In this document: one piece after another, positions 6,904-61,949 of the stretch
How positions within the stretch are numbered: position 1 is the stretch's first letter
Layout: every line of letters begins with the position of its first letter
Assembly: GCF_000143415.4 (NCBI RefSeq)
Contig: NW_003314378.1
Location: 260,110-324,109, forward strand
Direction: 5' to 3'
Origin: Selaginella moellendorffii
Taxonomy: Eukaryota > Plantae > Lycopodiophyta
DNA: 64,000 nt
The notes under the pieces: generated by a model
What the model was told of the DNA's origin: nothing
Database searches by the model: none
The model's input: the letters and a program-made list of their open reading frames with translations, nothing else
Program-made: the position numbers and the translations under genes

Positions 6904-7149
6904 ATGGATCGTGGAAGGATGCTTCTTGCCATCGCATTGGTGATCATGATCAGCGGCAACATCGATTGTTCCAGGCCGGGCTCGTTTTCGGCGATGAGCC
7001 AGCAGGCCGAGCTTTTCAATTCCGAATTGCGCCTTCCTGTTGTTAACAAGATCCACAATCTTTTCGAAAGGACCTTCCGGAGAATGCTCATCCAGGGTCA
7101 GCCCACGCCATCCTCCGGCCCTTCCTGGTGCTGCCACGACCATCCATAG
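6904..7149 (+). CDS. Small secreted peptide precursor (IDA/PIP-PIPL-like SGPS motif), unit 1
   Basis: MDRGRMLLAIALVIMISGNIDC-SRP signal-peptide-like N-terminus, RRML motif, C-terminal QPTPSSGPSWCCHDHP*. The ORF is conserved across units. Confidence 0.7.
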   Translation: MDRGRMLLAIALVIMISGNIDCSRPGSFSAMSQQAELFNSELRLPVVNKIHNLFERTFRRMLIQGQPTPSSGPSWCCHDHP

Positions 7150-7211
7150 CATTTTCCTAAAACGATTTTTCATTTCAATACCACCATTATTTGGCTAATT
7201 GAAGGGGCGGA

Positions 7212-7233
7212 CAGCCACGTGGCTGACACGTCA
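7212..7233. promoter_or_regulatory. G-box/ABRE palindrome (cagCCACGTGGctg) with adjacent tgACACGTca
   Basis: Perfect 14-bp palindrome around CACGTG, kept in all units just 3' of the peptide gene. Confidence 0.4.
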
Positions 7234-7739
7234 CGCTGGGAGACGGCGGCGAATTCTCCTCCAAATCCTCCGCCTCCACCCCTTTCCCCATTCTTCCCCA
7301 CCTCCGCTTCCTCCCATTACAGTCACACATCAATTTACCCAGCTTGCGTCCATGAGGCGCTTATCTCACCAAGGTGAAGGGGAATGATAAAGGCATCTTT
7401 CCATTTTTCCCTGTCAACTTCAAGAGACTTGAGAGCTGCTTGGAATTCCCCGAAGTTCCAGTCCAGCAAGTAAAGTCTCCACAAGACTTTCAGGGATGTC
7501 TTGTACAGCTGCGAACAATCAGCCGTGGTGGTGGCTTGCCCTTGTTCTGGCGAGAAGATCTGCAAAGAGGAGCGGCTGCAGTGAGTCTCGAAGATTCGCA
7601 GGTCGTTCGGATTGGGCATGGCTTGAGGGCCGGGCAGGGCAGGAGGGACAAGAGCCGGTGGTGCTAGAACAAGCTGCAGAGGGAAGTGGGCAGCACTGGC
7701 AAAGGCAGATTTTTTCCCACTTGACGATGGAGTCTCATT

Positions 7740-8310
7740 GAAATGCACGTCTGGTGAGATGATCAGCGTCTTGGAGACAGGATTGTAGACCTTGTAAGCC
7801 TTGTGTTCAATGCTATAGCCTAGGAAAATGCCGCTTGTTGAAGTGAGTTTTTTTCTAGTTTTAGAGGGGATATGGACGCCATGGAAGGTGCGCTAATCCA
7901 TTTGAATTCCACTTTGTGCAAGAACCCTTGACAATCCTGGACCTCAACATTGGCAAGCACTTAAACGTGTCTTTTGGTACTTACGAGATATGTTTCCTTA
8001 CAGTCTTAAGGCCAAGAGTCAAGCTATGTTTCCTTACAGTTTTAAGGCCAAGAGTCAAGCTATGTTTCCTTACAGTCTTAAGGCCAAGAGTCAAGCTTAC
8101 TGGGCTGGCTTTGGCTATATTGTTTAGCCTTCGGTGTTGGGCCGGGTGTCGTTGAGGAGGCGGCAAAGCCAGATGGCCTCTTTGCATGCGGAACTAGCCT
8201 CCGCCTCACAGCTGGAGCAGGCAACGACGCTCTGCTTCTTGCTGCCAATTGCATTGTAATCTACTGTAACAATCATCACAAGATTAATTCCCGGACGAAA
8301 CACGCACCAC
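7740..8310. mobile_element. Old Ty1/Copia relic (integrase C-terminus on -, RT-end/RNase H on +); part of every unit
   Basis: GIFLGYGIEHKAYKVYNP (integrase SH3-like, - strand). PGPQHWQALKR, SKKQSVVACSSCEAE..A.KEAIWLRRLL and IYCDNQ..SRTKH (+ strand in most copies). Confidence 0.75.
7989..8096 (+). repeat. 36-bp direct repeat x3 (tatgtttccttacagtcttaaggccaagagtcaagc), unit 1 only
   Basis: Three near-identical copies; single copy in other units. Confidence 0.9.
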
Positions 8311-8990: not shown

Positions 8991-9133
8991 CGCTCCAAGA
9001 GCGTGTTTAAAATGGAAATTGGCGGGAAAGCGATGTGTTTGTTTTCTAGCTGTGCATACTATCGAAAGGTGGAAAAAGAATTTATTTATCTTTCCATTCA
9101 GTCAAGTCAGCCTCCCAACCTTTGGAGAAACTT

Positions 9134-9799
9134 TCAAGTCATGCCGATGAGCTCTCTCAACTTCTGGATGAGACCACGGTCGTCAATCTGGAACGCTTTT
9201 GCGATCACGTTGTCGTTGATTGGAGGACTGGAATCAAACACCGCCTTGGCCACCTGAGTTGCCCCGGGGTTTTGGCTGTTGAAGCCAGCCATCGCAACCG
9301 CAGGCTCCTTTCCAACGTTGAGCTGGAAGTGAATGAGTCCCCGAGGGAAGACGAACAGATCTCCAGGATAGAGCATTTGGGCGAAGAGCTTGTTGTCCGG
9401 CAAGGTGGTGATGAATCCGACTAAGAGGTTCCCGTGCACGAGGAAGAGCAACTCGGATCCTCGGGGATGGACGTGGGGGGGATTGGTGCCGCCGGGAGCA
9501 TAGTCGATGCGGGCAAAAGCTACACCAAAGGTGTTGAGACCGGGGAAATTGTTGACACTCGCCAGCGTGACGTTGGAGCCGAGCTTGTTGTCGGTGTTCC
9601 CGGGAGTCGCCAGCAGGCTCGACTTGAAGTCCTCGGCTTTCACATCGGCGGCCGCCTTGCAGACGACGCCGTTCACTTTGATCTTGGAGCCATTGTCTGC
9701 AACGCAAAAGTCCTACAGCATATCTTCATCCGCAGCATGTACAAACAAGATGGAGCTGATTGCTAGGAGGAAGGATAGAACAAAACGAAGATGAGCCAT
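9134..9799 (-). pseudogene. Germin-like protein, unit 1, premature stop
   Basis: Germin boxes are present, but the Q of QDFCVAD is TAG (+ strand tcctacagca at 9711-9720). Several extra amino-acid changes. Confidence 0.85.
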
Positions 9800-11317: not shown

Positions 11318-11362
11318 TACGTGAGGTAAGAATGTAGATTGGAATTTTTGGTGAGGTGTTGC

Positions 11363-11512
11363 TTTAATGAAAGGTGAAACCGTGTGATGGTGCTCAAGAT
11401 CCGTCATAGCATATATGGAATGGAAAATGTACATATGTGTGACATGGTGAACCGGTGAAAACTCGTGTCTCTCCACGTGGACTAGCCACGTGGCACAGGG
11501 CCACTCTCAACA
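11363..11512 (-). repeat. 3' LTR of Copia-1 (~150 bp)
   Basis: Near-identical to 15598-15734; starts TGTTG on the - strand. Confidence 0.9.
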
Positions 11513-13140
11513 CTCCCAGTGGCACTGTGGCCATCACGAGTGATGCTCATCAGTGGAGAAAGTCCCAGCCCTTCGCGATGGACTTGAAATCGATCTTGGG
11601 GTAGTGCTTTTGTGAAGATATTTGCAACCTGAGTGGTTGTGTCACAGTAGATCAGCTCAATTGTGCCATCTTCCACTTTCTCACGAACAAAATGATGATG
11701 AATCCCAAAGTGTTTGGTGCGTGAATGAAAGCGAGGATTGGCCGCTAACGCAATGCAGCTTTGATTGTCGCAGAAGAGGCGAGTGGGAGTCTTCACACTC
11801 ACACCAAGGTTAGAAAGTAGTGAGCGTAACCACACACCTTCTTTGGTAGCTTGTGAGGCTGCCAAATATTCTCCTTCAGTACTAGAGGTTGCCACTGTAC
11901 TTTGCTTCCTGCTGCACCACGAGACTGTCGCACTGCCCAGGGAAAACGAATAGCCAGAGGTGGACTTGCGTGTGTCACAGTCTCCCCCAAAATCAGCATC
12001 ACAGTAGCCCGTGAGGGTAAGCGCTTTTCCCTGGTAGCACAATCCAAGGTAAGTAGTACCTCGAAGGTACCTGAAGATGCGTTTCACTGCTGCCCAATGT
12101 TGAGATCCAGGATTAGCCAGGAATTGGCTAACTTTGCTCACGGCAAAAGAAATATCTGGGCGCGTACAAACAGCTGGATACATGAGACTGCCAACAGCTT
12201 GTCTGTAAGGGATGGAGTCCATGGCTCTCTTGTCTTCCTCTGTCTCAGGAGACATGGCTCGTGAAAGCTGGCAGCCTAGTTCCATTGGTGTCGCCACTGG
12301 ATTAGAGCTCGTCATAGAAAACCTGGCCAGTATATCTTCTATATACTTGGCTTGGTGAAGATAGATAGTGCGTTGAGAGCGATCACGCACAAGTTCCATG
12401 CCAAGAAAGTAGGAAGCCGAGCCAAGAGTTTTCATCTCAAATTGGCTGCAAAGATCTCGCTTAACCTGGAGAAACATTAAGCGATGATTATGGATGACAA
12501 GAGTATCATCAACATAAAGAGCGATGATCACAAATGATTCACCCTCCACCCGAATATAAAGATTCGGGTCTGCCTCGCTACGGGAAAAGCCCACACTTAG
12601 TATAAAATTGTCAAAGCGTTTGTACCAAGATCTGGGTGCTTGTTTCAAGCCGTAGACAGCTTTCTTGAGAAGCCAGAGATGATCCTCTTTTCCAGCGGCT
12701 AGAAATCCTTCTGGCTGTGCCATATAGATTTCTTCTTCAAGCGCACCATAAAGGAATGCCGTGGTCACATCCATCTGTTCCAGATCAAAGTCTCCCACCG
12801 CAGCAAAATTAATCAAGGAACGAAGAGTAGAATGTTTAACCACTGGAGCGAAGGTGTCGTTGTAGTCAAGTCCAGGAACTTGCGAGCATCCTTTTGCCAC
12901 CAATCGCACCTTGTAGCGAACCGAGCCATCAGGATTAAGCTTCAGAGCATACACCCACATGCTCTTGATAATCTGGCGATTGGAAGGCACAGTTGGAACA
13001 AGAACATGTGTCTCGTTCTTTTGCTGTGAAGCAATCTCGGCTTCCATTGCTACACGCCAGTAAGACGCTTCCTGTGAGGCCATGGCTTCTCCATAGGTCC
13101 TCGGAACAGTAGGAGTCCCAGCTGCACGAGAGGAGACCAT
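11482..13140 (-). CDS. Copia reverse transcriptase-RNase H (open frame)
   Basis: KVRLVAKG, QMDVTTAFLYG, LYVDD, YCDADFGGD, CDNQS and RTKH motifs. Confidence 0.9.
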   Translation of the reverse strand: MVSSRAAGTPTVPRTYGEAMASQEASYWRVAMEAEIASQQKNETHVLVPTVPSNRQIIKSMWVYALKLNPDGSVRYKVRLVAKGCSQVPGLDYNDTFAPVVKHSTLRSLINFAAVGDFDLEQMDVTTAFLYGALEEEIYMAQPEGFLAAGKEDHLWLLKKAVYGLKQAPRSWYKRFDNFILSVGFSRSEADPNLYIRVEGESFVIIALYVDDTLVIHNHRLMFLQVKRDLCSQFEMKTLGSASYFLGMELVRDRSQRTIYLHQAKYIEDILARFSMTSSNPVATPMELGCQLSRAMSPETEEDKRAMDSIPYRQAVGSLMYPAVCTRPDISFAVSKVSQFLANPGSQHWAAVKRIFRYLRGTTYLGLCYQGKALTLTGYCDADFGGDCDTRKSTSGYSFSLGSATVSWCSRKQSTVATSSTEGEYLAASQATKEGVWLRSLLSNLGVSVKTPTRLFCDNQSCIALAANPRFHSRTKHFGIHHHFVREKVEDGTIELIYCDTTTQVANIFTKALPQDRFQVHREGLGLSPLMSITRDGHSATGSVESGPVPRG

Positions 13141-13159
13141 TGTCTCGATGAGACGCTCA

Positions 13160-13897
13160 GTAGGCTACTTCCAGACTTTCAAGGATATGGGAGAAACACA
13201 AACTGGGAAAATGCTCAAGCGATTGAGAAGTGATGGTGGAGGCGAATTCACTTCCAATGCTTTCAACCAGCTGTGTGAGCAAGGAGGGATTGTGCGAGAA
13301 CTTACAACGCGAGAGACTCCACAACAGAATGGCGTAGCTGAGCGCAAGAATCGCACACTAGTGGAGAGTGCTCGGGCAATGCTACTTTCCAGTGGTTTGC
13401 CTCGCAGCTTCTGGTTTCACGCTGTCTTGACGGCGAACTATCTCCAGAACCGGCTCCCCACCTCTGCCCTTGCTGGCATCACTCCTGAAGAAGCATGGAG
13501 TGGCAAGAAACCTACAGTTACGCATTGGGCACACATCCCTGATGGAATGCGCAAGAAATTGGACCCCAAGAGCCAGAAGGCTGTGTTTGTGGGCTACAGC
13601 CTCGATCACAAAGCCTATCGTCTCTGGAATCCAATCACGAAGCAGGAGATCCTGAGCAGAGATGTGGTTTTCAACGAGAATTCTTTTCTTCCTTCTAGTC
13701 AAGGTTCTACTTCCAGACCTACCTTGACCGAAGAAAATGACGTTGAAGCGGAACAAGATCAGTTGACTGTCGGCACGATCACTGTGCCGCTTCAAACAGT
13801 CCCTACGCAACAACCCATGCCCGCTTCTACTCCAACACCACCAGCCCCGCCGCCTCCTCCAGATCCTCTACGCAGATCGATCCGCACAAGGCGCACT
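13160..13897 (+). pseudogene. Copia integrase core/C-terminus, inverted relative to the element
   Basis: LRSDGGGEF, TPQQNGVAERKNRT, FVGYS..KAYRLW, SRDVVFNE. Confidence 0.9.
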
Positions 13898-13956
13898 GGA
13901 CGACTAAGAACCTGGATCTAGACTTCAACGAGTGGTGGGATTGGGTATCGGCACCC

Positions 13957-15453
13957 ATGGCAGCCACTGTTCCTACAAATCCGCCTCCAAATCCACCACC
14001 TATTTCCCCTCCCATCACAAATCCGACTGTGCCTACAGCGGATATCGTTTCAGTGGACGCAAATCCACCAAAATTTGATGGGAGCAACTGGTGCTTCTGG
14101 AAGACAAAATTCGAATCCTATATGGATGAACGAGGCCTCTGGGACATCACCACAGGAACTGAGACACTTCCAGATACAGCTACAGTGGATGAAACTGCGA
14201 AGTATCGCAAGAAGGACCGGAGAGCTTTGGGCAAATTCCATGCAGCGCTGGAGGGGCGAGAATTTCATTGCATTGGACGGTGCAAGAGTGCAAAGGAAGC
14301 GTGGGAGGCCATGAAGCAGACTTACCAGATCCCTTCAACATCCCATCGCATTTTTTTACGGAAGCAGCTTCATGCACTGGTGATGGCTGAAGGGGACGAC
14401 CTCAAGGATCATCTTGCTGCAGCGAGAACAATCTTAGATGATCTTAAGGATGTGGGAGCAAACATAGAGGATGAAGAAGAAGCAGAGCTGGTGCTCGTCA
14501 CACTTCCTCCATCCTTTGATCCTCTCATACGTAACAGCCTCCAGGACGATGATCTGAGACGAAGAGCAACAACAGGATCAGAGGCCGTTGCATTCTACTC
14601 TTCTCTCAGGAAAGAAACAGTGAACAAAGGGAAACAAGGAGCCTCTTCATCCAAGAAGCCCAAGTGTTCTCATTGCAACAAGAAAGGCCATGACGAAGCT
14701 CAATGCTGGGTGAAAAATCCATCTCTCAAGCCTGTAAGGAACAATGCAAAGAAAAAGGTGGTACACGCCTTCATCTTGTCACGAGCTATGGCAGTGGCAG
14801 CACTGTCTACAGAGTGCATCTACCTGGATTCTGCTGCTACAGACCATATGTTCAACAGTGATAAGTACTTTGAAGCCTATGATCCTACAGCCACAGAGGA
14901 GTATGTCATCGTTGGCAATGCCCAGCAGCTTGCTGTGAAAGGAATTGGAACCATCAAGTTGACTTTACCACAAGGAATAGTCGTAAAGATCCACAAGGTT
15001 ATTCCTGGTTTATGTGCTAATTTGTTCTCTGTGGGACAATTTGCTGAGGATGGGTATCAGTTCGCCATTACACCTCCCTTACCATGCTGCCAGATCTTGC
15101 TGGACGGAGTCTGGGCCTACACGCACAAAAGACAACGACCAGTCACTCACTGGAGCTTTGGCACGCACGCCTGGGGCATCCTAGTGCTGATAGAATCAAG
15201 CATCTCGCACGCGAGCAGATGGTTGAAGGTCTAGACCTGGACCCAAGAGCAGTTCTTCCATTGTGCCAGGGCTGTCAGCTAGGAAAATCTACTCGCCAAC
15301 CTTTCCCCAAGACTGGAGCATCTCGAGGAACTTGTACACACTGATGTGTGTGGCCCGATGGCCACCACAGCAGTGGGAGGTATCCAATACTTTATCAGTT
15401 TCATTGATGACTACAGTCGTCGCACTATGATCTACCCTATGGCTCGCAAATCC
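13957..15453 (+). pseudogene. Copia gag-protease-integrase N-terminus, inverted relative to the element, frameshifted
   Basis: KFDGSNW, CSHCNKKGHDEAQC, YLDSAATDHM, LWHARLGH..CQGCQLGK, CGPM..YFISFIDDYSR. Confidence 0.88.
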
Positions 15454-15585
15454 CAATCGTTACACCCTCTTGCAAGGCCTGGAGCGCTTGGATTAGGGCA
15501 TGCCTCTGTCCGGAGGCTCCGATTCACCCTAGCAAGTGTTGCCCTGATCCTATGGTTTCGAATTCTTCTCGCTCTCCCAGGCATT

Positions 15586-15597
15586 GCTCTGATACCA
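15586..15597 (-). promoter_or_regulatory. Primer-binding site complementary to tRNAi-Met (TGGTATCAGAGC)
   Basis: + strand gctctgatacca, abutting the 5' LTR. Confidence 0.92.
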
Positions 15598-15734
15598 TCT
15601 AACGAAAGGTGAAACCGTGTGATGGTGCTCAAGATCCGTCATAGCATATATGAAAATGTACATACGTGTGACATGGTGAACCGATGAAGACTCGTGTCTC
15701 TCCACGTGGACTAGCCACGTGGCACAGGGCCACA
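15598..15734 (-). repeat. 5' LTR of Copia-1 (~137 bp)
   Basis: Direct repeat of 11363-11512, flanked by PBS and TSD. Confidence 0.9.
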
Positions 15735-19620: not shown

Positions 19621-19859
19621 ATGGATCGTGCAAAGATACTTCTTGCCATCGCATTGGTGATCATGATCAGCGGCAACATCGAATGTTGCAGGCCGCGTTT
19701 TCGGTGATGAGCCGGCAGGCCGAGCTTTTCAATTCCGAATTGCGCCTTCCTGTTGTTAACAAGATCCACACTCTTCTCGAAAGAACCTCCCGGAGAATGC
19801 TCATCCAGGGTCAGCCCACGCCAGCTCCCGGGCCTTCCGGGTGCTGCCACGATAATTGA
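19621..19859 (+). pseudogene. Secreted-peptide copy U2, frameshifted
   Basis: A short deletion after CCRP gives a stop at 19705-19707; QPTPAPGPSGCCHDN is left out of frame. Confidence 0.7.
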
Positions 19860-21686: not shown

Positions 21687-22352
21687 TCAAGTCATGCCGA
21701 TGAGCTCTCTCAACTTCTGGATGAGACCACGGTCGTCAATTTGGAACGCTTTCGCGATCACGTCGTCGTTGATTGGAGGATTGGAATCAAACACCGCCTT
21801 GGCCACCTGAGTCGCCCCGGGGTTTTGGCTGTTGAAGCCAGCCATCGCAACCGCAGGCTCCTTTCCAACGTTGAGCTGGAAGTGGACGAGTCCCCTAGGG
21901 AAGACGAACAGATCTCCAGGATAGAGCATTTGGGCGAAGAGCTTGTTGTCCGGCAATGTGGTGACGAATCCGACTAAGAGGTTCCCGTGCACGAGGAAGA
22001 GCAGCTCGGATCCTCGGGGATGGACGTGGGGGGGATTGGTGCCGCCGGGAGCATAGTCGATGCGGGCAAAAGCTACACCAAAGGTGTTGAGACCGGGGAA
22101 ATTGTTGACACTCGCCAGCGTGACGTTGGAGCCGAGCTTGTTGTCGGTGTTCCCGGGAGTCGCCAGCAGGCTCGACTTGAAGTCCTCGGCTTTCACATCG
22201 GCAGCCGCCTTGCAGACGACGCCATTCACTTTGATCTTGGAGCCATTGTCTGCAACGCAAAAGTCCTGCAGCATATCTTCATCCGCGGCATGCACAAACA
22301 AGATGGAGCTGATTGCTAGGAGGAAGGATAGAACAAAACGAAGATGAGCCAT
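21687..22352 (-). CDS. Germin-like protein (cupin), intact, 221 aa
   Basis: Signal peptide, box A QDFCVAD, box B GTNPPHVHPRGSE, box C GLVHFQLNVG. The true start is MAHLRF because the upstream ATG overlaps the TATA box. Confidence 0.93.
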   Translation of the reverse strand: MAHLRFVLSFLLAISSILFVHAADEDMLQDFCVADNGSKIKVNGVVCKAAADVKAEDFKSSLLATPGNTDNKLGSNVTLASVNNFPGLNTFGVAFARIDYAPGGTNPPHVHPRGSELLFLVHGNLLVGFVTTLPDNKLFAQMLYPGDLFVFPRGLVHFQLNVGKEPAVAMAGFNSQNPGATQVAKAVFDSNPPINDDVIAKAFQIDDRGLIQKLRELIGMT

Positions 22353-27956: not shown

Positions 27957-28199
27957 ATGAATCGTGGAAAGATACTTCTTGCCATCGCATTGGTGATCAT
28001 GATCAGCGGCAACATCGAATGTTGCAGGCCGGGCTCGTTTTCGGTGATGAGCCAGCAGGGCGAGCTTTTCAATTCCGAATTGCACTTTCCTGTTGTTAAA
28101 AAGATCCACACTCTTCTCGAAAGAACCTCCCGGAGAATGCTCACCCAGGGTCAGCCCACGCCAGCTCCCGGCCCTTCCGGGTGCTGCCACGATAATTGA
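27957..28199 (+). CDS. Secreted-peptide precursor U3 (C-terminus QPTPAPGPSGCCHDN)
   Basis: Intact ORF with signal-peptide-like N-terminus and RRML. Confidence 0.68.
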   Translation: MNRGKILLAIALVIMISGNIECCRPGSFSVMSQQGELFNSELHFPVVKKIHTLLERTSRRMLTQGQPTPAPGPSGCCHDN

Positions 28200-36411: not shown

Positions 36412-36657
36412 ATGGATCGTGGAAGGATACTTCTTGCCATCACATTGGTGATCATGATCAGCGGCAATATCGATTGTTCCAGGCCAGGCTCATTTTTGGT
36501 GATGAGCCAACAGGCCGAGCTTTTCAATTTCGAATTGCGCCTTCCTGTTGCTAACAAGATCCACACTCTTCTCGAAAGGACCTCCCGGAGAATGCTCATC
36601 CAGGGTCAGCCCACGCCACCCTCCGGCCCTTCCGAGGACAACCACGATCATGATTGA
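36412..36657 (+). CDS. Secreted-peptide precursor U4 (C-terminus QPTPPSGPSEDNHDHD)
   Basis: Intact ORF. Confidence 0.68.
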   Translation: MDRGRILLAITLVIMISGNIDCSRPGSFLVMSQQAELFNFELRLPVANKIHTLLERTSRRMLIQGQPTPPSGPSEDNHDHD

Positions 36658-42992: not shown

Positions 42993-43100
42993 NNNNNNNN
43001 NNNNNNNNNNNNNNNNNNNNNNNNNNNNNNNNNNNNNNNNNNNNNNNNNNNNNNNNNNNNNNNNNNNNNNNNNNNNNNNNNNNNNNNNNNNNNNNNNNNN
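42993..43100. other. Assembly gap/masked run of 108 N
   Basis: N run; the homologous U5 interval 51423-51530 is also 108 bp. Confidence 0.98.
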
Positions 43101-43819: not shown

Positions 43820-44065
43820 TCAATCATGATCGTGGTTGTCCTCGGAAGGGCCGGAGGGTGGCGTGGGCTGACCCTGGATGAGCATTCTCCGGGAGGTCCT
43901 TTCGAGAAGAGTGTGGATCTTGTTAGCAACAGGAAGGCGCAATTCGAAATTGAAAAGCTCGGCCTGTTGGCTCATCACCAAAAATGAGCCTGGCCTGGAA
44001 CAATCGATATTGCCGCTGATCATGATCACCAATGTGATGGCAAGAAGTATCCTTCCACGATCCAT
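43820..44065 (-). CDS. Secreted-peptide precursor U6 (same translation as U4)
   Basis: Intact ORF. Confidence 0.66.
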   Translation of the reverse strand: MDRGRILLAITLVIMISGNIDCSRPGSFLVMSQQAELFNFELRLPVANKIHTLLERTSRRMLIQGQPTPPSGPSEDNHDHD

Positions 44066-48254: not shown

Positions 48255-49618
48255 CTTAAAGAAGGAGAGGACGTTGCTCGTTGTGAGCCATGATCTGCGG
48301 TAAACTTGCGTGATTAGTGCTTGGATCTTATTTTCTTTCCTCGCAGAGAGTTGATTCCACTGGTGGACAAGGCATGGGTTATGGATATGGGTGGGACTTT
48401 GGTTGAGCAGCTAAATTCTACTCTCTAGTTCGTGGAATGTTACTCTTAAGATAAAACTATACACTGACCGATCAAACCAGTGAGGCTGGCTGGGCAATTA
48501 AACGTTTTTAACATTGCAACGGACTTCGCAGGCTCAACTAACAACAGCGGAAGGGCTCCTGGAACCAGGCAGCAGCGGAGGACATCCACATGACTAATGG
48601 CGCCTCCCAACTCTACATTGTTAACAGCACTACACAATTGGGCACCATAGATGGAACAGGAGTAGTATAAATGATTACATTTTGGTCAGCCAAACTATTC
48701 TTTAATCATGTGGTGTACTGTTTAGATTTTTCCTTGACAAAATGGTATGGCGGGGAATTCCAAGAGTTCTTGACCGCCTCATGTCTGACTAGGATGCATA
48801 TGCTGCTTACAACACTCCTATCAACAACCAGAACTCACTGTGGTCACGACTAAGTCATGCCAGCATGGGTGCCCGACTTTGCCCAACAAGTCCAAGAGCT
48901 TTAGAATGCACTGCCCACGACCACTGATACTGAGGTCAGCTGACTGATTGACATGCTCACACAGCAGCACAGGAGTATTTTCTCAGTTCACTCCCACCAC
49001 CCCAACTGGATGCTTTCCTAGATTTCACTGGTGGGACAAATTATAAAACTTTTTAAAATCATAAGTTTATTGTATTAAACTGATTAATAAAGTGGCAGCA
49101 ATAAACATTCTATTCTGCCCATGACAATGATGCAAGCAATAATCACAATGACTATGACTATGTATGTCTCATGAACTATCCTTCTACACAGTTGTCTGCA
49201 AAATTGATAACCTACATAGATGTACCTTTGGTCGATATACCCATAGTTTATTTGTATCAGCAATGGACCTACACAATCCATAATAATTCCGTTAAAACTC
49301 CACACATAAAAAGTCTCTACAAAGCAATTTAGTGTCAAGTTTTTAAGACCGTGTAAAACTCGAGTTTCACTGAGACCGGTTCTTACCATCAAAACCAAGA
49401 TCGTCATCATCTACACACATAAAAGATGATTTTGACGGCTCTAGACAAGCCCGGTAAAAGAAAACTTCCGAGACGACTTGGCAGCAAACAAATCAGATTG
49501 TGTTACGCGGACAGCAAGAGTAAAAAATGAAATAGAAGGGAACAGAAGACCGTGTACCTAAAATCGTGCACGATTCACGACGAAGTCATCCAAAGGACCT
49601 CGCCTCCCCTCCTCCGGC

Positions 49619-49625
49619 TATAAAA
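49619..49625 (+). promoter_or_regulatory. TATA box of GLP (TATAAAA), conserved in intact GLP copies
   Basis: ccggcTATAAAAtgcc, ~50 bp upstream of ATG 49676. Confidence 0.6.
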
Positions 49626-49675
49626 TGCCTGCCCCTCCCTCATATAGCTCCATCAGTCTTTTCCAAGCTCACAAG

Positions 49676-50341
49676 ATGGCTCATCTTCGTTTTGTTCTAT
49701 CCTTCCTCCTAGCAATCAGCTCCATCTTGTTTGTGCATGCCGCGGATGAAGATATGCTGCAGGACTTTTGCGTTGCAGACAATGGCTCCAAGATCAAAGT
49801 GAACGGCGTCGTCTGCAAGGCGGCCGCCGATGTGAAAGCCGAGGACTTCAAGTCGAGCCTGCTGGCGACTCCCGGGAACACCGACAACAAGCTCGGCTCC
49901 AACGTCACGCTGGCGAGTGTCAACAATTTCCCCGGTCTCAACACCTTTGGTGTAGCTTTTGCCCGCGTCGACTATGCTCCCGGCGGCACCAATCCCCCCC
50001 ACGTCCATCCCCGAGGATCCGAGCTGCTCTTCCTCGTGCACGGGAACCTCTTAGTCGGATTCGTCACCACCTTGCCGGACAACAAGCTCTTCGCCCAAAT
50101 GCTCTATCCTGGAGATCTGTTCGTCTTCCCTCGGGGACTCGTCCACTTCCAGCTTAACGTTGGAAAGGAGCCTGCGGTTGCGATGGCTGGCTTCAACAGC
50201 CAAAACCCCGGGGCAACTCAGGTGGCCAAGGCGGTGTTTGATTCCAATCCTCCAATCAACGACGACGTGATCGCGAAAGCATTCCAGATTGACGACCGTG
50301 GTCTCATCCAGAAGTTGAGAGAGCTCATCGGCATGACTTGA
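49676..50341 (+). CDS. Germin-like protein U5, intact
   Basis: Germin boxes A, B and C; signal peptide. Confidence 0.93.
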   Translation: MAHLRFVLSFLLAISSILFVHAADEDMLQDFCVADNGSKIKVNGVVCKAAADVKAEDFKSSLLATPGNTDNKLGSNVTLASVNNFPGLNTFGVAFARVDYAPGGTNPPHVHPRGSELLFLVHGNLLVGFVTTLPDNKLFAQMLYPGDLFVFPRGLVHFQLNVGKEPAVAMAGFNSQNPGATQVAKAVFDSNPPINDDVIAKAFQIDDRGLIQKLRELIGMT

Positions 50342-52217
50342 AAGTTTCTCCAAAGGTTGCGAGGCTGACTTGACTAAGTTACATATATAAATAAATTATT
50401 TTTCCAAAGCTCTTACCTTTCGGAAACTTTCGTAAGCACAGCTAGATCGCTTTCCCGCCAATTTCCATTTTAAACACGGTCCTGGAGCGATTTGCCAGGA
50501 CATACGTCGATCCAATGCCCGAAACATATCGTAATGCGATCGGCAAGATGCCACCAAAACCCTACAAACCAGAGCATCCGGCACAAACGGCATGGCACCA
50601 GCAATTCCTCGGCATTCTCCAGTTGCCTGCCACGGCCGAAGATATCGATCATGCAGACGAAGTGATCACTGCCTGGCGCGATCCTAAAATCCCCTGTCAC
50701 GAGAAGAAAGAAATCCTTATTGCGATTCACGGAGCTGATGTAGGCGCAGGCCGGAGTGTCACCTTTCCCATTGCGCCCTTGCCTCAATGAGCAAACGCAG
50801 TGATCCCTTTATGCAGCATTGTAATGGGCTAAAGGTGACACTGTAGTGAAGTGAGGTCCATGATCTTACAATGTTCAAGGGAAAGACCAAAACTACACCT
50901 TGTCAACTCACCCAAGCCCTCTCTAAGGGGCTTTTGGCAAGATGACAAAGTATCTCCTTTAGCCTACTTTGAGAGGATTTCGGGATTTACCTGGACGTAT
51001 TTGAGTGTACTGCATATAATAATCAAGTGGCTGGACATGAGAAGGTTCTGTATGGCTCTATCAGGAGAGGCACAGAGAATGTTTGTTTCATGCTGTGCAC
51101 GAGATCAGATTGTTTGGTTGGATGAAGCAGTGGACTCGATTTCCAGGCTGTTGTGATGTTCAATTAAGATTGCATTATCGAGATTGGAATCACAAGAACA
51201 TGGAAAGAACTGGACGTGTCTCCCAGCGTGGTGCGTGTTTCGTCCGGGAATTAATCTTGTGATGTTTGCTCGAGGCGATGTAGCCTTGATTGTCACAGTA
51301 GATTGGTGTTGGGCCGGGTGTCGTTGAGGAGGCGGCGAAGCCAGATGGCCTCTTTGCATGCGGAACTAGCCTCCGCCTCACAGCTGGAGCAGGCAACGAC
51401 GCTCTTCTTCTTGCTGCTAACTGCATTGTGAAGGCTAAACAATTTAGCCAAAGCCAGCCCAGTAAGCTTGACTCGTGGCCTTAAGACCGCAAGAAAACGT
51501 ATCTCGGAAGTACGAAAAGACGCGTTTTAGTCAATGTTGAGGTCCAGGATTGTCAAGGGTTCTTGCACAAAGTGGAATTCGAATGGATTAGCGCACCTTC
51601 CATGGCGTCCATATCCCCTCTATAACTAGAAAAAAAACACACTCCAACAAGCGAACGAAGCATTTTCCTAGGCTATGGCATTGAACACAAGGCTTACAAG
51701 GTCTACAATCCTGTCTCCAAGGCGCTGATCATCTCACCAGACGTGCATCCAATGAGACTCCATCACGTCAAGTGGGAGAAAATCTGCCTTTGCCAGTGCT
51801 GCCCAATGCCCAATCCGAACGACCTGCGAATCTTCAAGACTCACTGCAGCCGCTCCTCTTTGCAGATCTTCTCGCCAGAACAAGGGCAAGCCACCACCAC
51901 GGCTGATTGCTCGCAGCTGTACACGACATCCCTGAAAGTCTTGTGGAGACTTTGAACTTCTGGGAATTCCAAGCGGCTCTCAAGTCTCTTGAAGTTGACA
52001 GGGAAAAATGGAAAGTTGCCTTTATCATTCCCCTCACCTTGGTGAGACAAGCGCCTCCTGGACGCATGCTGGGTGTGTGACTGTAATGGGAGGGAGCGGA
52101 GGTGCGGAAGAATGGGAAAAGAAGTGGAGGTGGAGGATTTGGAGAATTCACCGCCAGATGGAAAGAGCCTGACGTGTCTTCTTGCGTGACGTGTCAGCCA
52201 CGTGGCTGTCCGCCTCT

Positions 52218-52463
52218 TCAATCATGATGGTGGTTGTCCTCGGAAGGGCCGGAGGGTGGCGTGGGCTGACCCTGGATGAGCATTCTCCGGGAGGTCCTTT
52301 CGAGAAGAGTGTGGATCTTGTTAACAACAGGAAGGCGCAATTCGGAATTGAAAAGCTCGGCCTGCTGGCTCATCACCGAAAACGAGCCCGGCCTGGAACA
52401 TTTGATGTTGCCGCTGATCATGATCACCAATGCGATGGCAACAAGCATCCTTCCACGATCCAT
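52218..52463 (-). CDS. Secreted-peptide precursor U5 (C-terminus QPTPPSGPSEDNHHHD)
   Basis: Intact ORF. Confidence 0.68.
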   Translation of the reverse strand: MDRGRMLVAIALVIMISGNIKCSRPGSFSVMSQQAELFNSELRLPVVNKIHTLLERTSRRMLIQGQPTPPSGPSEDNHHHD

Positions 52464-52705
52464 TCCAGCCACAAAAGCACTAAACGTAGTGATGATATCG
52501 TTGTATAAGAACCAAGAGCTGTGCTTGCTCCGATACGATTGGATCCAATGGGCCTCCAGTGTTTTATATTCACAGAAAAAGTTCTTCACCGGGCTTGGTA
52601 AACAGTCAAGTCCTTTGCGCGTGCCAATGTCAAAACAAGACTCGTTAGCTTCCAAGCCAGAACACTCTACGAGCAGTTTTTCAAAGTCCTGCACAAAAGA
52701 CAGCT

Positions 52706-53239
52706 GCTGCCCTAGCAAATGGGCTGTCCAAACGCTCGGCCTGCGCCCCAGCTATATGCCTGTAAAGTGAGGAGAATATTAGCAATCTTGAGATTCTTCA
52801 ACAGCGAGAGTTCACCTTCAAGTTGACTTTGTCGGACCCAAGAGATTTTTTAAGAACTTTGATTATGTCGTCGTTGAAGAGATTGTCAAAAAGGCCATCA
52901 GTTCCCAAAACAATGATGTCCCCCTTGCAGACAGGGATCTTGAATTCCTGTAGACAGAAAATTAGCGAATTTAAGGGAAAAGCAAGAATACCTCTGCAAC
53001 CGTTGGATGGTCACCAAAAGTTCCAACTTGAAACAGAAAGTTAAAACTATGCTGCATGGGCTCCGAGCTTGCAACTACTTGCCAATTGCGAACTATGATG
53101 AACCCCGAGTCTCCCAAGCTTGCTGCATACAGTGTCTGAAACATATGACCCGACTCAGCCTCAAACATCAAATCCGACTAGCTTAGTTGCTCAAACAATG
53201 CAGCCACAAGAACCGTTGCTGATCCTTTGGCCTTTGTAC
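52706..53239 (-). pseudogene. PP2C copy U5, middle/3' fragment (5' fragment at 40476-40715)
   Basis: Homology to PP2C exons; bounded by Copia-2 and by a deletion that removed the fucosyltransferase. Confidence 0.82.
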
Positions 53240-56200
53240 TGTGGAGACAATTGATGACAAGTCTCCACATCAGCAAAAAAGACATGTCATTCATCCAAGA
53301 CACCAACCACCAAGAGTCACACCCATACTGTTATGTACATAACCATACCAAAGCAATGAAGTCGATAGAGCATTCTGCGTACACTGGCAAACACAGCAAC
53401 ACAACGAGCAGGACCACGCTAGGGCTCTTGTAGTCCTTGCTAGGGTGGAACGACAGATTCAAGAACGCAAGTGAGCACAACATGATGTCCATCCGTGCTT
53501 CTACCCTAATTGTCGCTCTATGTGCATGGCGTATGGGCGTCCCTTCCAGTGATTCCCACTGCCTCTTCCCCGCCCCTGCCCCCGCCCCCGCCCCCCCCCC
53601 CCCCCCCCTCGCTTCTAGCTTACTCTATTGTTTTGTCCTTTCTTCTAGAAACTAATGGCTACCAGTACTCCACCTCGCACTACATCTAGAACCACCCTAG
53701 CGAGCACCATGGCCATCCTGGCTGGCAACTAAGATGTAGGATGGGAGAAGCTACTCTAGAAGTTCACAGGCGAGAACTTCACAACTTGGAAGACCAAAGT
53801 CCAATTAATCCTAATGGCAAAAAATTGTTGAGATTTGGTGGAGGGAACCGAAGTGAGACCTCAAGATATAGAAGCAGCCTTGCAAGCTACTTAAGACTCT
53901 AAGAACGGCAAAGCCCTTTCCGTGATTGGACTAGGTCTTGGAGATGAATTTATTCATCTCCTTGATCTAGAAAAATCCGCCAAGGCCAATTGGGACTCCC
54001 TTTCCCAAGTCTTTGTAGCCAAAGCTGCTAATGCTAAATTGGTTCTGACCCAGAAATTTTTCTCCCTATGCATGCAGCCTGGTGAGATGATGGCAACATA
54101 CATTGGGAAGCTCAAGGGTTTAATGCAGCAGCTGAAGGAAGTAGGTGCTGCAGTTTCCGATGACTATGCAAAAGCCTTCTTGCTCTACTCTGTATCTTAA
54201 GAGTTGCAACAATTGTCCTCCATGCTTTCTTTTGTCCCAGGCAAAACCATGGAGGAGCTCTACTCTGATCTACTCAAGGAAGAGCACAAGATTGCTGAGC
54301 GTCAAGCTGGCCATCAAGGATCCCCTCAAGCTGCTCGCGAGCAGGCCTTGTTTCTTGGTAAGAAACAATCGAGTGGGGAGTAGAGGAAAGGAGGCACTAG
54401 CCGTGGGCCTCGTATCTCTTCTGCTACAACTCCCAGCTCTTGATTTAACTTCTCCAAGAAGAAAAAAGGTCCTTGCAACTATTGTGGAAAGATGGGGCAT
54501 GTCGAGTGTGAGTGTTGTGCAAAGAAGGCTGCCACCCAGCACATGCTTACCCAGAGCAACTTGTTGTTGATGATGGCTCTTTACCCGTCACCGGTGTCTG
54601 CTCTTGAGGTTCTATGGCTGGATAGTGGTGCCTCTTTTCACATGACTCCCTTAAGGTCTGCCTTTCACACTTACAAGGCTCTTCAAGCTCCACAACAGGT
54701 TTATGTCGGCGACAAGCGACCACTCTAGGTGGAAGGTCGTGGCATGGTGGTGATCAGGCTATCCACTGGACCTTTTAAGGAGGTTCATCACGTGCACTTT
54801 GTACCTGAAGCAGCACATACAGTTCTTTCTATAGGTGTAGCCTCAGATCAAGGCTTTACTACCACCTTCTTCCCAAAAGGGTGCACCATCTATGGTCGTG
54901 ATGGTACTTCTGTAGCTAGTGGCATGAGGTATGAAACACTCTACTGTTTAAATGCAGAATTGGTTTTTCCAACTCAAGTGCTTGCTTTCTGAGCACAAGA
55001 CACCATTGAGCTCTGGCATGCTCGTCTGGGGCATGTCAATGAACGAGATCTACATGCCTTGGCTCGTAACCAGCATGCTAAAGGCATCATGCTCCCAACT
55101 GGCCATCTAGGCGTGTGTGAAACTTGCTATCTTGGGAAGCAAGTTCACCTTCCTTTTCCATCAAGAACCATGGAGGACCAAGCTACAGGCTTATTGGATC
55201 TGGTTCACAATGACGTGTGCTACTTGCCATGGAAACACTCAGCCACAAGAGGTACTTTGTGTCTTTTATCAATGACCATTCCAGATATGCTGTGGTGAGC
55301 CTTCTCCATGCCAAGAGCGAAGTGTTCAACCACTTTAAGCTTTTTAAGAGCTGGGCAGAGACGTCTACTGGCCAAAAGATTCGTGTGTTACGCACAGATG
55401 GTGGTGGAGAGTACCTGAACAAAGAGTTTCTCAACTTTCTAGCTGAGGCTAGCATTGTTCACCAGTACACAACAGCCCATACTCCCCAACAGAACGGCAT
55501 GGCAGAGCACCTCAATCGCATGCTACTAGAGACTGTTTGTTGCCTTCTCCAACACACAAGCATACCCAACTCTTTTTGGGGTGAAGCCATTAACACGGTT
55601 GTTTATATCCGTAATCGCCTTCCCACAAGGAGCACTGGTGTGGTTCCTTATCAAGCTTGGACTGGGAAGTGTCCTCAGTTAGGGCACTTGAGGGTCTTTC
55701 GCTGCACAATGTATGCTTGCATTCCAGATGCGACTCGGCAGAAGCTGGATCCTAGGAGCCAGAAGACCATCTTCGTGGGCTATCATGCTCATTCCAAGGC
55801 CTATCACCTACCTCTATAATCTTGCTCTCAAGAAGCTCGTGGTCAGCCAAGATGTCTCTTTCAATGAGCAAGATCTTTATCGCCACATTCAAGGTACTAT
55901 TCCTTCAAGTTCTAACTTGGTGGACTTGACCCCAGTGCTGGAAGACGAGCTCACCCACCCACCAACACCAGCAATCCAAAGGCTACTCGTTCCAGAAGGA
56001 GGAACACCTCTTCCACTTGGTGATGAACCTTCTCCAGCAACTCTGCTGCTACCAGTTCCTCTAGTCACTTCGGTGGCTACTAGCAGCAACACTACTTCAT
56101 CCAATGAGCAGAATCTTGCTGCTACTGTGGACGAGTTGTTCATTGGTGAAGAAACAGTTGGAGGATCTTCCCGCTCACCTCCTCCAGATTCTCTCATGAC

Positions 56201-56780
56201 ACCACCACCTCGTCAAGAGATTGGAGCTATTACCTGTTTAGGACAAGTGAGCAAGCCAACGGTCAAAGCTCTAGAATCTCTTGCTCAAGCTCCATGCAAG
56301 AAGGGATTCTACTGGGCCATGAGCTCCATTGTTGAACCTCGTGGCTACCAAGTTGCTCTCTCCAATCCTGATGCCTCACAGTGGCAAGCAGCCATGCAGG
56401 ACGAGTATGACTCATTGATCAAGAATGGAATCTGGACATTGGTTCCCCTCCCTCCCGGCAGGAAGGCAGTCACAGCCAAATGGCTGTTCAAGAAGAAATA
56501 TCGAGCTGATGGCAGCATTGAGCGCTACAAGGCACACTTTGTAGCTCGTGGTTTCTCTCAGATCCAAGGAGTTGATTACTCTCAAACTTATAGCCTTGTT
56601 ATAAAGCTGACAACAATTTGTGTTTTGATGAGTCTTGCAGTTGAGCTCGACCTGGAGCTCCATCAACTTGATGTGAGAACTGCATTCCTGAATGGTGATC
56701 TTGAGGAGGAGGTGTATGTTGCCCAGCCTCCTGGATTTATACGTCCCGGACAAGAGCATCTAGTCTGCCGCTTGCACAAG
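53240..56780 (+). mobile_element. 5' part of Copia-2 (leader, gag, protease, integrase, RT N-terminal half), degenerate
   Basis: KFTGENFTTWK, a zinc-knuckle remnant, WLDSGASFHM, LRTDGGGEY, HQLDVRTAFLNG..VCRLHK. Many stops and frameshifts; no intact LTR or PBS recognised. Confidence 0.88.
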
Positions 56781-57160
56781 ACTAAGAGGTTCCCGTGCAC
56801 GAGGAAGAGCAGCTCGGATCCTCGGGGGTGGACGTGGGGGGGATTGGTGCCGCCATGAGCGTAGTCAATGCGGGCAAAAGCTACACCAAAGGTGTTGAGA
56901 CCGGGGAAATTGTTGACACTCGCCAGCGTGACGTTGGAGCTGAGCTTGTTGTCGGTGTTCCCGGGAGTCGCCAGCAGGCTCAACTTGAAGTCCTCGGCTT
57001 TCACATCGGCGGCCGCCTTGCAGACGACGCCGTTCACTTTGATCTTGGAGCCATTGTCTGCAACGCAAAAGTCCTGCAGCATATCTTCATCCGCGGCATG
57101 CACAAACAAGATGGAGCTGATTGCTAGGAGGAAGGATAGAACAAAACGAAGATGAGCCAT
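56781..57160 (-). pseudogene. 5' half of U6 germin-like gene at the right inversion breakpoint
   Basis: MAHLRF...HGNLLV, then runs into antisense Copia RT. Confidence 0.9.
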
Positions 57161-58346: not shown

Positions 58347-59645
58347 TACGCGAGGTAAGAATGTAGCTTGGAAGTTTTGGTGAGGTGTTGCTGGTCTCTC
58401 TATCTCTTGAAGCGCCCGAAGAGACAACGCATGTTACTTTCGATGAATCGGCAGTTTCCCTCCCACAACCGGCCAAGGCACACAACTCGGCTTGCAAAAA
58501 TGGCGAAGAGGTTTGCAATTTTTTTTCCTTCTCTATATACTGAAGTCTCAAGCTTGCAGGGGTGCCAGAATGCTGAAACGGATTCTACCAGCTGGTGAGC
58601 TTGTTTATTTTCGCGTGGCTATTGGTGAAATTCATGATGTTCTTGCTTTTTAAGGTTTCTTCGACTCGACTATGCTGCCGCGATGCGTCCCCATCCTGAG
58701 AAGGTGCAAAGCTTACTTGCTAATTTTTGTAGAACTTCTAAGCTTTGCTGTTTACAGGCTCAAAGAGGGGGTGAAGATGCTTTCTTCACTGAAGGCTCCT
58801 GGATGGGTGTTGCTGATGGTGTTGGGGGCTGGGCCGGAGAAGGTAAGAAAAATCTTTCTTTGAGTCTGTTTTTCCAAGAGTTTTTACTGGTTTTCAGACA
58901 TTGATTAGGGGATGTATTCTCGGGAGCTTATGAGACATTGTCAGGCATTGGTTGTAAACAGCAAAGGGAAACCGGACCCCAAGGACGTGCTTGTCAAAGC
59001 CGCCGGCAGTACAAAGGCCCAGGGATCAGCAACGGCAGGGATCAGCAACGGTCCTTGTGGCTGCATTGTTTGAGCAAGTAAGCTAGTCGGATTTGATGGT
59101 TGAGGCTGAGTCTGGTCATATATTTCAGACACTGTACGCAGCAAACTTGGGAGACTCGGGGTTCATCATAGTTCGCAATTGGCAAGTAGTTGCAAGCTCG
59201 GAGCCCATGCAGCATAGTTTTAACTTTACGTTTCAAGTTGGAACGTTTGGTGACCATCCGACGGTTGCAGAGGTACTCTTGCTTTTCCCTTAAGTTCTCT
59301 AATTTTCCGTCTACAGGAATTCAAGATCCCTGTCTGCAAGGGGGAAACCATTGTTTTGGGAACTGATGGCCTTTTTGACAATCTCTTCAACAACGACATA
59401 ATCGAAGTTCTTAAAAAATCTCTTGGGTCCGACCAAGTCAACTTGAAGGTGAACTCTCGCTGTTGAAGAATCTCAAGATTGCTGAGATTCTCTTCACTTT
59501 ACAGGCAGCTGCAGCAGACCTTGTAGCTGGGGCGCAGGCCAAGCGTTTGGACAGCCCGTTTGCCAGGGCGGCTGCAAAGGCGAGAATGAATTGGAGTGGT
59601 GGAAAGCTAGATGATACCACGGCAGTTGTGGCGTTTGTGACGTGA
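58347..59645 (+). pseudogene. PP2C copy U7
   Basis: No exon 1, in-frame TAG (attgattag, ~58900), 16-bp duplication at 59020-59051. Confidence 0.83.
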
Positions 59646-60404
59646 TATTTGAGTCGCGAAGGGTAAACATTTCAAGCAGTTTTTGCAGGGGCCAGTGTAA
59701 ATTGCTCAGGCCGTTAATATTTGCGGTATTTCCGGTTCTTTCGCTAATTGTATGACATCCTTTTGATTTGATTCAAACCGCTCATTCTGTTTAGAGGGAA
59801 CTGCTCAAGGTCACTTGAGGTGTTAGACATGTAGTTTAGCTGGACGATCACGAGCAAGCTCAAGATACTCAAGCTCTCCGGCAACATGATCTCTGGCTCG
59901 TCCTTCTCGGGGGTACATCGAGCTGCTAGGCCTTTGGCACGATGGGATCTTTCGCGACTGCGTGGCTCTCCAGGAGCTCTTCAACAGTCTCACACCCTCG
60001 TCCAGCAGCAAACTCCAGAATGTCATGCTCGGAAGTGCTCGAACAACGTTTCAGAGGAGCTCGTGTGGGCTGTATCTTGTCTCTCAGCTTGGGCAGACTC
60101 TTTGAGTTTGCTCGGATCTCTCGGAGAACCGGTTGGAGGTTCTGAAGGACTAAGTGGTGGAAACCCTGCTCCGGTCGGATAGCAACAAAGAGCTCACGGA
60201 GAACAGCTTGAAGGACAGCTCCAGGCGAGCTCGTGTGGAGGATCCTTGGATACCGCTCTTGTCCCAGTACCGTGCGACTCCACCAGAAAGATGGTGAGGA
60301 AGGTGGCGACAAGCCAATTGGCTGGAGCCGTGACTTCCTTCTTTGTCTCGAGTATTTGGTCGCGTGTCCCGTCCACATGGTGAGCCACGGAATTGTTTCT
60401 TAGT

Positions 60405-61259
60405 GGTGGTGGTTGTTTCCCCGAGGTGCTGGTGGCCTATCTCGATTACAACTACAGGGACCAGGACAAGGCCTTCTTCTGCCAAGATCAACAGCAAGCT
60501 CTCAACTCCAGCGCGCGGTGGATCGTCCTCTCCTCCGGCCAGTACATCACTCCGGCGCTCTACAACGTCCCGGCTTTCAGGAGCAAGCTCGAGGAATGGT
60601 TCCCATAGCAGGAGGCCATCTTCCATCTCCTGGTGAGGTACCTGTTGCTTCCCAGTGACTTCGTGTGGGACAAGGCGGCCAGGTACTACGACGCGTACCT
60701 GGCCCAGGCCGAGCTTCTAGTCGGGGTCCAGCTGCAAAACCACATCTGGTTCTCGCCACCCAACCTCGCCGAGGATACATTCGACTGCCTGGTGCAACAA
60801 GGCGCGCTCGCAAACACCACCCAGGAGCGAGCTCCCAGATCGTCGGTGAGGAAGAACAGCAAGAAGGTGGCGGTGCTGGTGGTGTCGCTCAACTCTCAGT
60901 ACTCGGAGACGCTCAAGAGCAAGGTGCTGGGATACGATCTAGCGGACGGCTCCTCGGTGTCCATCCACCAGCCGAGCGTGGAGGGCGTGGAAAACACGAA
61001 GAACTTGGATCACGACGCACAGGCGGTGATGAAGATCTAGTTGCTGTCGATGAGCGATGTCCTGGTGACGAGCCCGCCATCCACGTTTGGCTACTCGGCG
61101 GCGGGGCTGGCGGGCGTGAGGCCCGTGCAGTTCGTGTGCGACCAGAACAAGAGCGTGGTTTGCTCGGTGAGGGAGACGATGGAGCCGTGCTACCACGTTT
61201 ATCCGGCTCAGTTCGCATTGAAAAGTGCGAATGCAGCGTGGGTTTCAGACTAGTCTATA
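60405..61259 (+). pseudogene. GT37 fucosyltransferase copy U7, 5' half deleted, nonsense codons
   Basis: Starts near FPEVLVAYLDY; stops at 60608 and 61040. Confidence 0.85.
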
Positions 61260-61706
61260 GAAAGTTCTTAAAGCTTTTAAAATTTTATTTTCTTTCTCGT
61301 GATAGATTTCTAAGTTGCTCCTTGGCTGCATGATGCAAATCTAGCGTCATTTGTAGATTTGCGTGGTCAGGTCATGCTCTTGGCCCACGCAAAGTTGCGC
61401 CAAGGCTGCCTTGAAATCCAGGTAATTTGGTACCAAGAGCTTATAGACTTCAAATGGCGAGCTGTCTTTTGGGCAGGACTTTGAAAAACTGCTCGTAGAG
61501 TGTTCTGGCTTGGAAGCTAACGAGTCTTGTTTTGACAGATGGCACGTGCAAAGGACTTGACTGTTTACCAAGCCCGGTGGAGAACTTTCTGTGTGAATGA
61601 ATATAAAGCACTGGAGGCCCATTGGATCCAATCGTAGCAGAGCAAGCACAGCTCTTGGTTCTTATACAACGATATCATCACTACGTTTAGTGCTTTTGTG
61701 GCTGGA

Positions 61707-61949
61707 ATGGATCGTGGAAGGATACTTCTTGCCATCACATTGGTGATCATGATCAGCGGCAACATCGATTGTTCCAGGCCAGGCTCGTTTTCGGTGATGA
61801 GCCAACAGGCCGAGCTTTTCAATTTCGAATTGCGCCTTCCTGTTGTTAACAAGATCCACACTCTTCTCGAAAGGACCTCCCGGAGAATGCTCACCCAGGA
61901 TCAGCCCACGCCAGCTCCCGGCCCTTCCGGGTGCTGCCACGATAAGTGA
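61707..61949 (+). CDS. Secreted-peptide precursor U7 (C-terminus QPTPAPGPSGCCHDK)
   Basis: Intact ORF. Confidence 0.68.
   Translation: MDRGRILLAITLVIMISGNIDCSRPGSFSVMSQQAELFNFELRLPVVNKIHTLLERTSRRMLTQDQPTPAPGPSGCCHDK

Follow-up and report, generated by a model that had tools for sequence, protein, structure and literature searches.

The lycophyte Selaginella moellendorffii raises the question of whether a tandem array on one of its scaffolds encodes a family of secreted peptide ligands. The window analyzed here, a stretch of 64,000 nucleotides (nt), is part of the scaffold GL377682.1 (GCA_000143415.2; record position = window position + 260109), which encodes its germin proteins and agrees with it at 100% in the loci compared. 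Self-comparison of the window detected a unit of ~8 kb present seven times at about 88-95% identity. The unit contains PP2C, the xyloglucan fucosyltransferase FUT (PF03254), a small peptide open reading frame (ORF), a PPR remnant and, encoded on the opposite strand, a germin-like gene (PF00190). The small ORFs, designated U1 to U7, had been taken for a lineage-specific peptide ligand family in a first-pass annotation. We consider it probable that they represent a diverged, lineage-specific subfamily of IDA-like prepropeptides, multiplied with the segmental repeat and probably serving as receptor-kinase ligands. In the predicted peptides, the proline-rich core of IDA is kept and the putative receptor-binding end is replaced by varied acidic or cysteine-pair tails. 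The unannotated precursors, their IDA-like build, the kept frames and the RNA of some copies agreed with the earlier proposal, but the absence of purifying selection on the amino acids did not.

Precursor anatomy and similarity to IDA

The features ascribed to the seven units, namely an ORF of ~80 amino acids (aa) with a TATA box, a hydrophobic N-terminus, C(S/C)RP, RRML and three types of tail, were all recovered (Table 1). TATAAA was located 104-105 nt ahead of the start codon in every unit (-104 in U1 and -105 elsewhere); in U6, a rearrangement has replaced the sequence beyond about 240 nt upstream. Residues 6-16 formed a hydrophobic stretch of 11 residues with mean Kyte-Doolittle values of 3.3-3.55, when the best value elsewhere in the precursor was at most 1.1, and the invariant R24 stood just after the signal peptide predicted from hydropathy. 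RRML was found in eight of the nine aligned copies and RRMV in B307, agreeing, as a pattern only, with the RRxL of SBT6.1/S1P substrates. The genes called at the loci examined included germin and PP2C but never the small ORF, as had been anticipated for genes this short.

Six of the seven ORFs were indeed intact, but only five are independent since U4 and U5 are identical; the two were counted once because they lie within an identical tract of 3,212 bp. Six further copies were found outside the window, four on GL377681.1 and two on GL377838.1, giving a total of 11 distinct copies, nine of them intact (U2 and B299 are broken). Across the copies, positions 9-12 of the 12-residue motif (12-mer) were EDNH or EDNN (acidic) and GCCH, WCCH or GCCR (vicinal-cysteine). 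The 9-nt block change described between tail types (gggtgctgc to gaggacaac) was present, and no template for it was found in the window. The His/Asp ends were partly made by one deletion spanning the old stop codon. All seven units (e.g. 36671-36705) carried a G-box (CACGTG) and one or two palindromic ACACGTC elements in the transcribed 3' region, 10-45 nt past the stop codon (about 70 nt in U1), which are possibly responsive to abscisic acid or light.

When 12-mers were scored against 16 published IDA 12-mers, the EDNN and EDNH types reached 38.6 and 33.9, compared with 32.9 for MpIDA1 itself. Of the 75,816 distinct 12-mers that the window and the sister scaffold contain, they ranked first and second. 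The core P-x-P-x-S-x-P-S with S(G/A/V)PS was present in U1, U4-U6, C1, B280 and B289, and PGPS instead of SGPS in U2, U3, U7 and B307. Six of the eight core positions were invariant, versus none of the seven after the core. IDA and PIP are marked by S(G/A/V)PS and by an Arg that follows the signal peptide (PMC4526919). By hydropathy, the precursors have a predicted signal peptide containing an aliphatic stretch and then a conserved Arg, as is characteristic of IDA. From RRML through position 12, 20 residues aligned gap-free with the EPIP of IDA, MLPQGQP of C1 paralleling YLPKGVP. The top matches of U1 and U4 in the ESM Atlas were IDL5/PF27884 clusters (0.89-0.90, up to 172 shared features), a moderate lead.

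The site-1 protease site proposed earlier was supported as to its pattern, which fits RRxL (cf. RRIL, RRAL), but RRML is in register with FGYL/YLPK of EPIP, which is cut by other subtilases. At the subtilase site preceding the mature 14-mer, IDA has Pro at P2 and Tyr at P4; in the array copies P4 is Met, and P2 is Pro in B280 and C1 only, being Ile or Thr in the window copies. Judging from this register, RRML could correspond to FGYL, which precedes the YLPK/GVPI cut of IDA, as readily as to an RRxL site for SBT6.1.

Transcription, selection and competing explanations

The runs X8, X9 and X10 were treated as RNA, a type guessed from the GT..AG joint in the FUT leader (FUT-type RNA carries a spliced leader intron of 56 nt) and from uncovered intergenic bins; along 34300-39900, none of their contigs lay in the neighbouring intergenic bins 35983-36169 and 39162-39535. 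RNA contigs spanned about 36300-37700, covering the small ORF and about 1 kb downstream. By exact agreement of difference counts, U1 was matched by contigs with 13 substitutions and one gap letter (X10) or 5 and 2, respectively (X9, X10). B280 was matched in the same manner by an X8 contig with 6 substitutions and no gap letter; two of its private alleles also occurred in X9, and its contig depth was high in two runs. RNA contigs thus represent at least U1 and B280, and the EDN tail itself is present in RNA through B280. The U1 tail appears to be transcribed as well, to judge from contigs on both sides and the joint at 36633-36653. The whole ORF of U7 was matched by a 577-nt contig of depth 2.5 in run X1, whose type is not known, and the private alleles of U4/U5 were absent from all four runs compared. 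The part of the peptide gene's 3' region that RNA covers passes, at 37150-37700, into what is left of a copia integrase/RNase H on the opposite strand, and a micro-inversion of ~125 bp (8133-8257), 3' of the peptide gene, sets unit 1 apart.

Substitutions were counted with each distinct variant taken once, over codons 1-77 of the 11 distinct copies. The small ORF showed 39 replacement changes (one being a stop) versus 8 silent ones, an omega of 1.83, compared with 0.13 for germin and 0.52 for FUT. The density of silent variants per site was alike in the small ORF (0.127), germin (0.137), FUT (0.125) and the flanks (0.127). Only one indel of a length not divisible by three was seen in the small ORF (231 nt, 11 copies) versus 8.2 expected from the flanks (P=0.0025), so that its indel density is below that of the flanks; a density equal to the flanks had been named as telling against the family. 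The reading frame is preserved and the amino acids are not constrained; the claim that the family is kept under selection was therefore borne out for the frame, but not for the amino acids (omega 1.8-2.4).

Context-specific rates predicted 23.6 replacements versus the 39 seen (P=0.007), or versus 33 when multi-nucleotide blocks were merged (P=0.06). A codon model for codons 1-69 gave an omega of 2.4, with twice the log-likelihood gain over omega=1 being about 4.9 (P about 0.03) in a test inflated by recombination, as the copies are mosaics. Positive selection on the small ORF is suggested by these results, not established. The replacement events observed/expected with blocks merged were 10/6.8 in the signal peptide, 13/10.6 in the pro-region and 10/6.2 in residues 59-77. 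Once blocks were treated as single events, the excess was spread over the whole precursor and not the tail, and the idea that diversification is concentrated at the mature peptide was not supported. Two block changes, along with the deletion across the stop codon, account for the diverse look of the tail (pi 0.137 vs 0.05). No other coding frame was clearly under purifying selection (omega 0.77-2.15).

Several observations weigh against an IDA-like ligand family. The similarity to IDA rests wholly on the first eight residues of the 12-mer; the last four scored -4.9 to +3.5 against IDA, (R/K)(R/K)HN followed SGPS in none of the copies, and the GCC-type 12-mers ranked only 7th and 23rd. The Atlas recognition (2091) was under its reliable level. 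Cross-species conservation was not seen, because protein collections held no sequence homologue: a word-based search, which covers proteins 0.55-1.75 times as long as the query, found none for U4 or an alignment of nine copies, no match came from Pfam, a PDB sequence search, a metagenome scan or phmmer against 1.84 billion representatives, and none of five precursors looked up exactly was present in a collection of 15 billion proteins. A literature search for the tail motifs, dominated by an unrelated term, gave none among the matches listed. The contigs indicate neither the start nor the level of the RNA, nor its strand, and no stop interrupts the antisense frame either (omega 0.78). The frameshift deficit was not significant versus the FUT rate (3.25 expected, P=0.16), which weakens the contrast drawn earlier with frameshifted FUT neighbours. 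Just one of nine FUT copies examined is intact. We regard the flank rate as the fairer neutral yardstick because FUT is partly selected, to judge from its omega.

Part of these data would also fit a single real IDA-like gene of the U1 type carried as a passenger of germin amplification, with the other copies neutral and the tail types mutational accidents. Germin, which the first-pass annotation did not include, is the most constrained gene of the unit and under strong purifying selection (10 of 11 copies intact, no indels in 11 copies). In X9 and X10 its RNA contigs were of very high depth, and its genes likely drive the amplification. The FUT copies are dead outside unit 1, much of the RNA comes from U1, the U4/U5 alleles were unseen in RNA, and U2 and B299 are broken. 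The ratio of replacement to silent changes within the small ORF did not differ from neutral (P=0.14), and the comparison with the FUT rate points the same way. We nevertheless regard the passenger explanation as unlikely, since about eight frameshifts were predicted at the flank rate, replacements exceeded the neutral expectation in the tests above, and B280, whose tail is of the other class and whose FUT neighbour is broken, was found in RNA at high depth as well. Even passenger copies would leave one added unannotated IDA-like gene.

A bolder reading, which we hold to be unlikely, is a lycophyte family of phytocytokines on which diversifying selection truly acts, with two expressed classes of ligand, the acidic EDN class and the vicinal-Cys class with its first Cys in the CTNIP register, that would address different HSL-clade receptors. 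If true, the array would be a snapshot of IDA-type ligands splitting into new specificities, independently of angiosperm CTNIP and PIP. It is improbable that the products are IDA-derived secreted peptides that no longer serve as receptor ligands and bind metal ions or act on microbes through a His/Asp/Cys-rich end (HDHD, HHHD, CCH). Each tail does have His, Asp or Cys past the core, replacing the basic HN end, and the gene was co-amplified with the metal-dependent germin (cupin) gene. However, the SGPS core is nearly invariant when compared with the residues after it, as expected of a receptor-binding surface, the His/Asp ends arose in part from a single deletion, and linkage to germin requires no function. 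Least credible is the reading that the frame is open by chance within transcribed DNA that is non-coding or antisense, with part of the copy number an assembly artefact, a reading for which the missing homologues, the RNA strand not being known, the open antisense frame and two identical tracts of 2.5-3.2 kb (U4/U5, U3/C2) amid 2-3% divergence speak, but which leaves unexplained the TATA box, hydrophobic N-terminus, Arg, RRxL and top-ranked IDA motif in order in one frame, the depletion of frameshifts and the lack of another frame clearly under purifying selection, and which could account for U5 and C2, not for 11 distinct copies.

Repeat unit, copy number and assembly

The array contains an inverted segment at 41.6-56.8 kb by self-comparison. 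This 15-kb inversion (41616-56780) is accompanied by copia-type pol fragments at 40716-41616 and 54-56.8 kb. A Ty1/copia long terminal repeat (LTR) retrotransposon with ~140-bp LTRs and a fragmented gag-pol lies between units 1 and 2 (11365-15733, - strand), and a 97%-identical copy of it was found on GL377681.1 near 273-277 kb. The FUT of unit 3 has a 21-nt tandem triplication near 27000-27100. Bordering the array, positions 180-1946 hold a 588-codon ORF rich in Ser/Ala/Phe with FG-like repeats and no Pfam match, which we take to resemble the C-terminal part of a nucleoporin.

The exactly identical inverted tract that holds U4 and U5 extends over 33939-37150 and 46538-43327 in surroundings that differ by 1-4%, and reflects either recent gene conversion or a collapse or duplicate of the assembly. 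At the assembly gap near U5, the U6 paralog has identical flanking 32-mers exactly 108 nt apart, the same as the N count, which is consistent with, but does not prove, continuity of the sequence. Around U3 (27500-30000), ~2.5 kb of the window is identical to the unplaced 15-kb scaffold GL377838.1, which differs by 2-3% on either side. The S. moellendorffii assembly retains both haplotypes, so that some of the 11 copies may be alleles. B280 as a positional allele of U1 was unsupported, the array order differing between the two scaffolds.

Table 1. Features of the array and copies of the small ORF (window positions, unless a scaffold is named)
Feature	Location	Strand	Remarks
PP2C-like gene segment, unit 1	2904..3700	+	further copies near 16004, 24097, 32532, 47943 (-), 58656
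FUT (xyloglucan-fucosyltransferase family), unit 1	4968..6419	+	483 aa; sole intact one among 9 copies examined
U1 TATA-like box	6800..6805	+	position -104
U1 precursor ORF	6904..7149	+	81 aa; tail PTPSSGPSWCCH-DHP; adjoins sole intact FUT; RNA contigs match
U1 12-codon motif in IDA register	7102..7137	+	
Germin-like gene, unit 1	9134..9799	-	nonsense codon at position 29
U2, broken copy	19621..19859	+	4-nt deletion past codon 25, with a stop at codon 29; the GCC-type tail is not in frame
Germin-like gene	21687..22352	-	intact; also intact at 30093-30758 (-), 38359-39024 (-), 49676-50341 (+)
U3 precursor ORF	27957..28199	+	80 aa; tail PTPAPGPSGCCH-DN; additional in-frame ATG 24 nt upstream
U4 precursor ORF	36412..36657	+	81 aa; tail PTPPSGPSEDNH-DHD
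Germin copy split by inversion	41616-41895 and 56780-57160		pieces at the two breakpoints
Assembly gap	42993..43100		108 N; 720 bp beyond U5 stop, inside no ORF
U5 ORF	43820..44065	-	identical to U4
U6 precursor ORF	52218..52463	-	81 aa; tail PTPPSGPSEDNH-HHD; FUT absent
U7 precursor ORF	61707..61949	+	80 aa; tail PTPAPGPSGCCH-DK
B280	GL377681.1		tail EDNN-DRD; FUT neighbour broken
B289	GL377681.1		tail EDNH-DHH; 9-nt in-frame deletion
B299	GL377681.1		broken, stop at codon 21
B307	GL377681.1		tail GCCH-DN; RRMV
C1	GL377838.1		tail GCCR-HQP
C2	GL377838.1		identical to U3

Proposed mode of action and comparison with known peptides

As IDA-like prepropeptides, the precursors would be routed to the secretory pathway by the signal peptide (about residues 1-22) and cut by a subtilase at or just past RRML. 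A peptide of 12-19 residues with the core PTP(P/S/A)(S/P)GPS, probably proline-hydroxylated, would be released to the apoplast and perceived by a leucine-rich repeat receptor kinase of the HSL clade, with a SERK as its co-receptor. Receptor specificity in IDA vs CTNIP lies in the final four positions of the 12-mer, and it is there that the copies fall into the acidic and the vicinal-cysteine class. Amino-acid constraint would be weak, possibly overlaid by diversifying selection, with some copies dying (2 of 11 broken). Processing at RRML and selection specific to the tail are possibilities only, and a role in stress or defence is a guess prompted by how fast the genes evolve and by germin lying next to them.

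IDA, PIP, CEP and CTNIP are thought to descend from one SGPS-type ancestor via C-terminal changes, young examples of which are rare. The array provides closely related, partly expressed precursors with a common core and a differing specificity end, and a small test set of five 12-mers versus three HSL-clade receptors.

Among the other families compared, CLE shares the central PSGP with the EDN-type copies, but its 12-mer R/H-x-x-P-S-G-P-(D/N)-P-x-H-(H/N) was not matched: the array copies lack R/H at position 1 and the (D/N)P-x-H(H/N) end, and scored 19-21 versus 34-39 against IDA. The terminal SPG(I/V)GH of CEP was absent. PIP/PIPL likewise have the SGPS core and a signal peptide followed by Arg, but by their definition (PMC4526919) end in GxGH, which no copy has at the extreme C-terminus, residues continuing past the motif. 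The combined IDA/IDL and PIP/PIPL architecture assigned earlier was accordingly retained for the IDA layout and core (PTPPSGPS), and not for the (R/K)(R/K)HN end of IDA or the GxGH of PIP. CTNIP/SCREW, the ligands of HSL3/NUT, share the IDA-like N-terminal core, and the differing C-terminal end of IDA and CTNIP sets the receptor choice (PMC13585564). In the S-G-x-x-G-C register of CTNIP4 (Ser53-Cys58), the first Cys is the same in C1, and U3 and U7 have x-G-x-x-G-C. Reports of CTNIP and HSL3 come from angiosperms, and CTNIP/SCREW have two Cys 9-11 residues apart (PMC9191895), whereas in the array copies the Cys are adjacent, the TNIP loop is missing and half of the copies are Cys-free.

The closest comparison is with IDA/IDL, represented by Arabidopsis IDA PIPPSAPSKRHN, Marchantia MpIDA1 EVPPQGPSPIHN and SmIDA1-3 (PMC8462819). 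The array copies and IDA have in common a single-exon precursor of about 80 aa, a signal peptide followed by Arg, a variable pro-region, and the 12-mer P-x-P-x-S-G-P-S in EPIP register after (M/Y)L-x-x-G with few residues beyond it. They differ at positions 9-12, where the acidic and vicinal-cysteine residues replace (R/K)(R/K)HN, and, unlike conserved developmental IDAs, the array copies show recent tandem amplification and an omega above 1. Solanaceae IDA-likes ending in KRCN, ERCN or CRSS demonstrate that departures from HN exist within the IDA family. Three IDA genes and three HSL-clade receptors have been reported in S. moellendorffii (PMC8462819); SmIDA1-3 are described as retaining His-Asn, and the array copies, set apart from them by description only, are probably not these genes. 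The array would thus work like IDA yet without one defining IDA feature, in a species from which IDA itself has already been reported.

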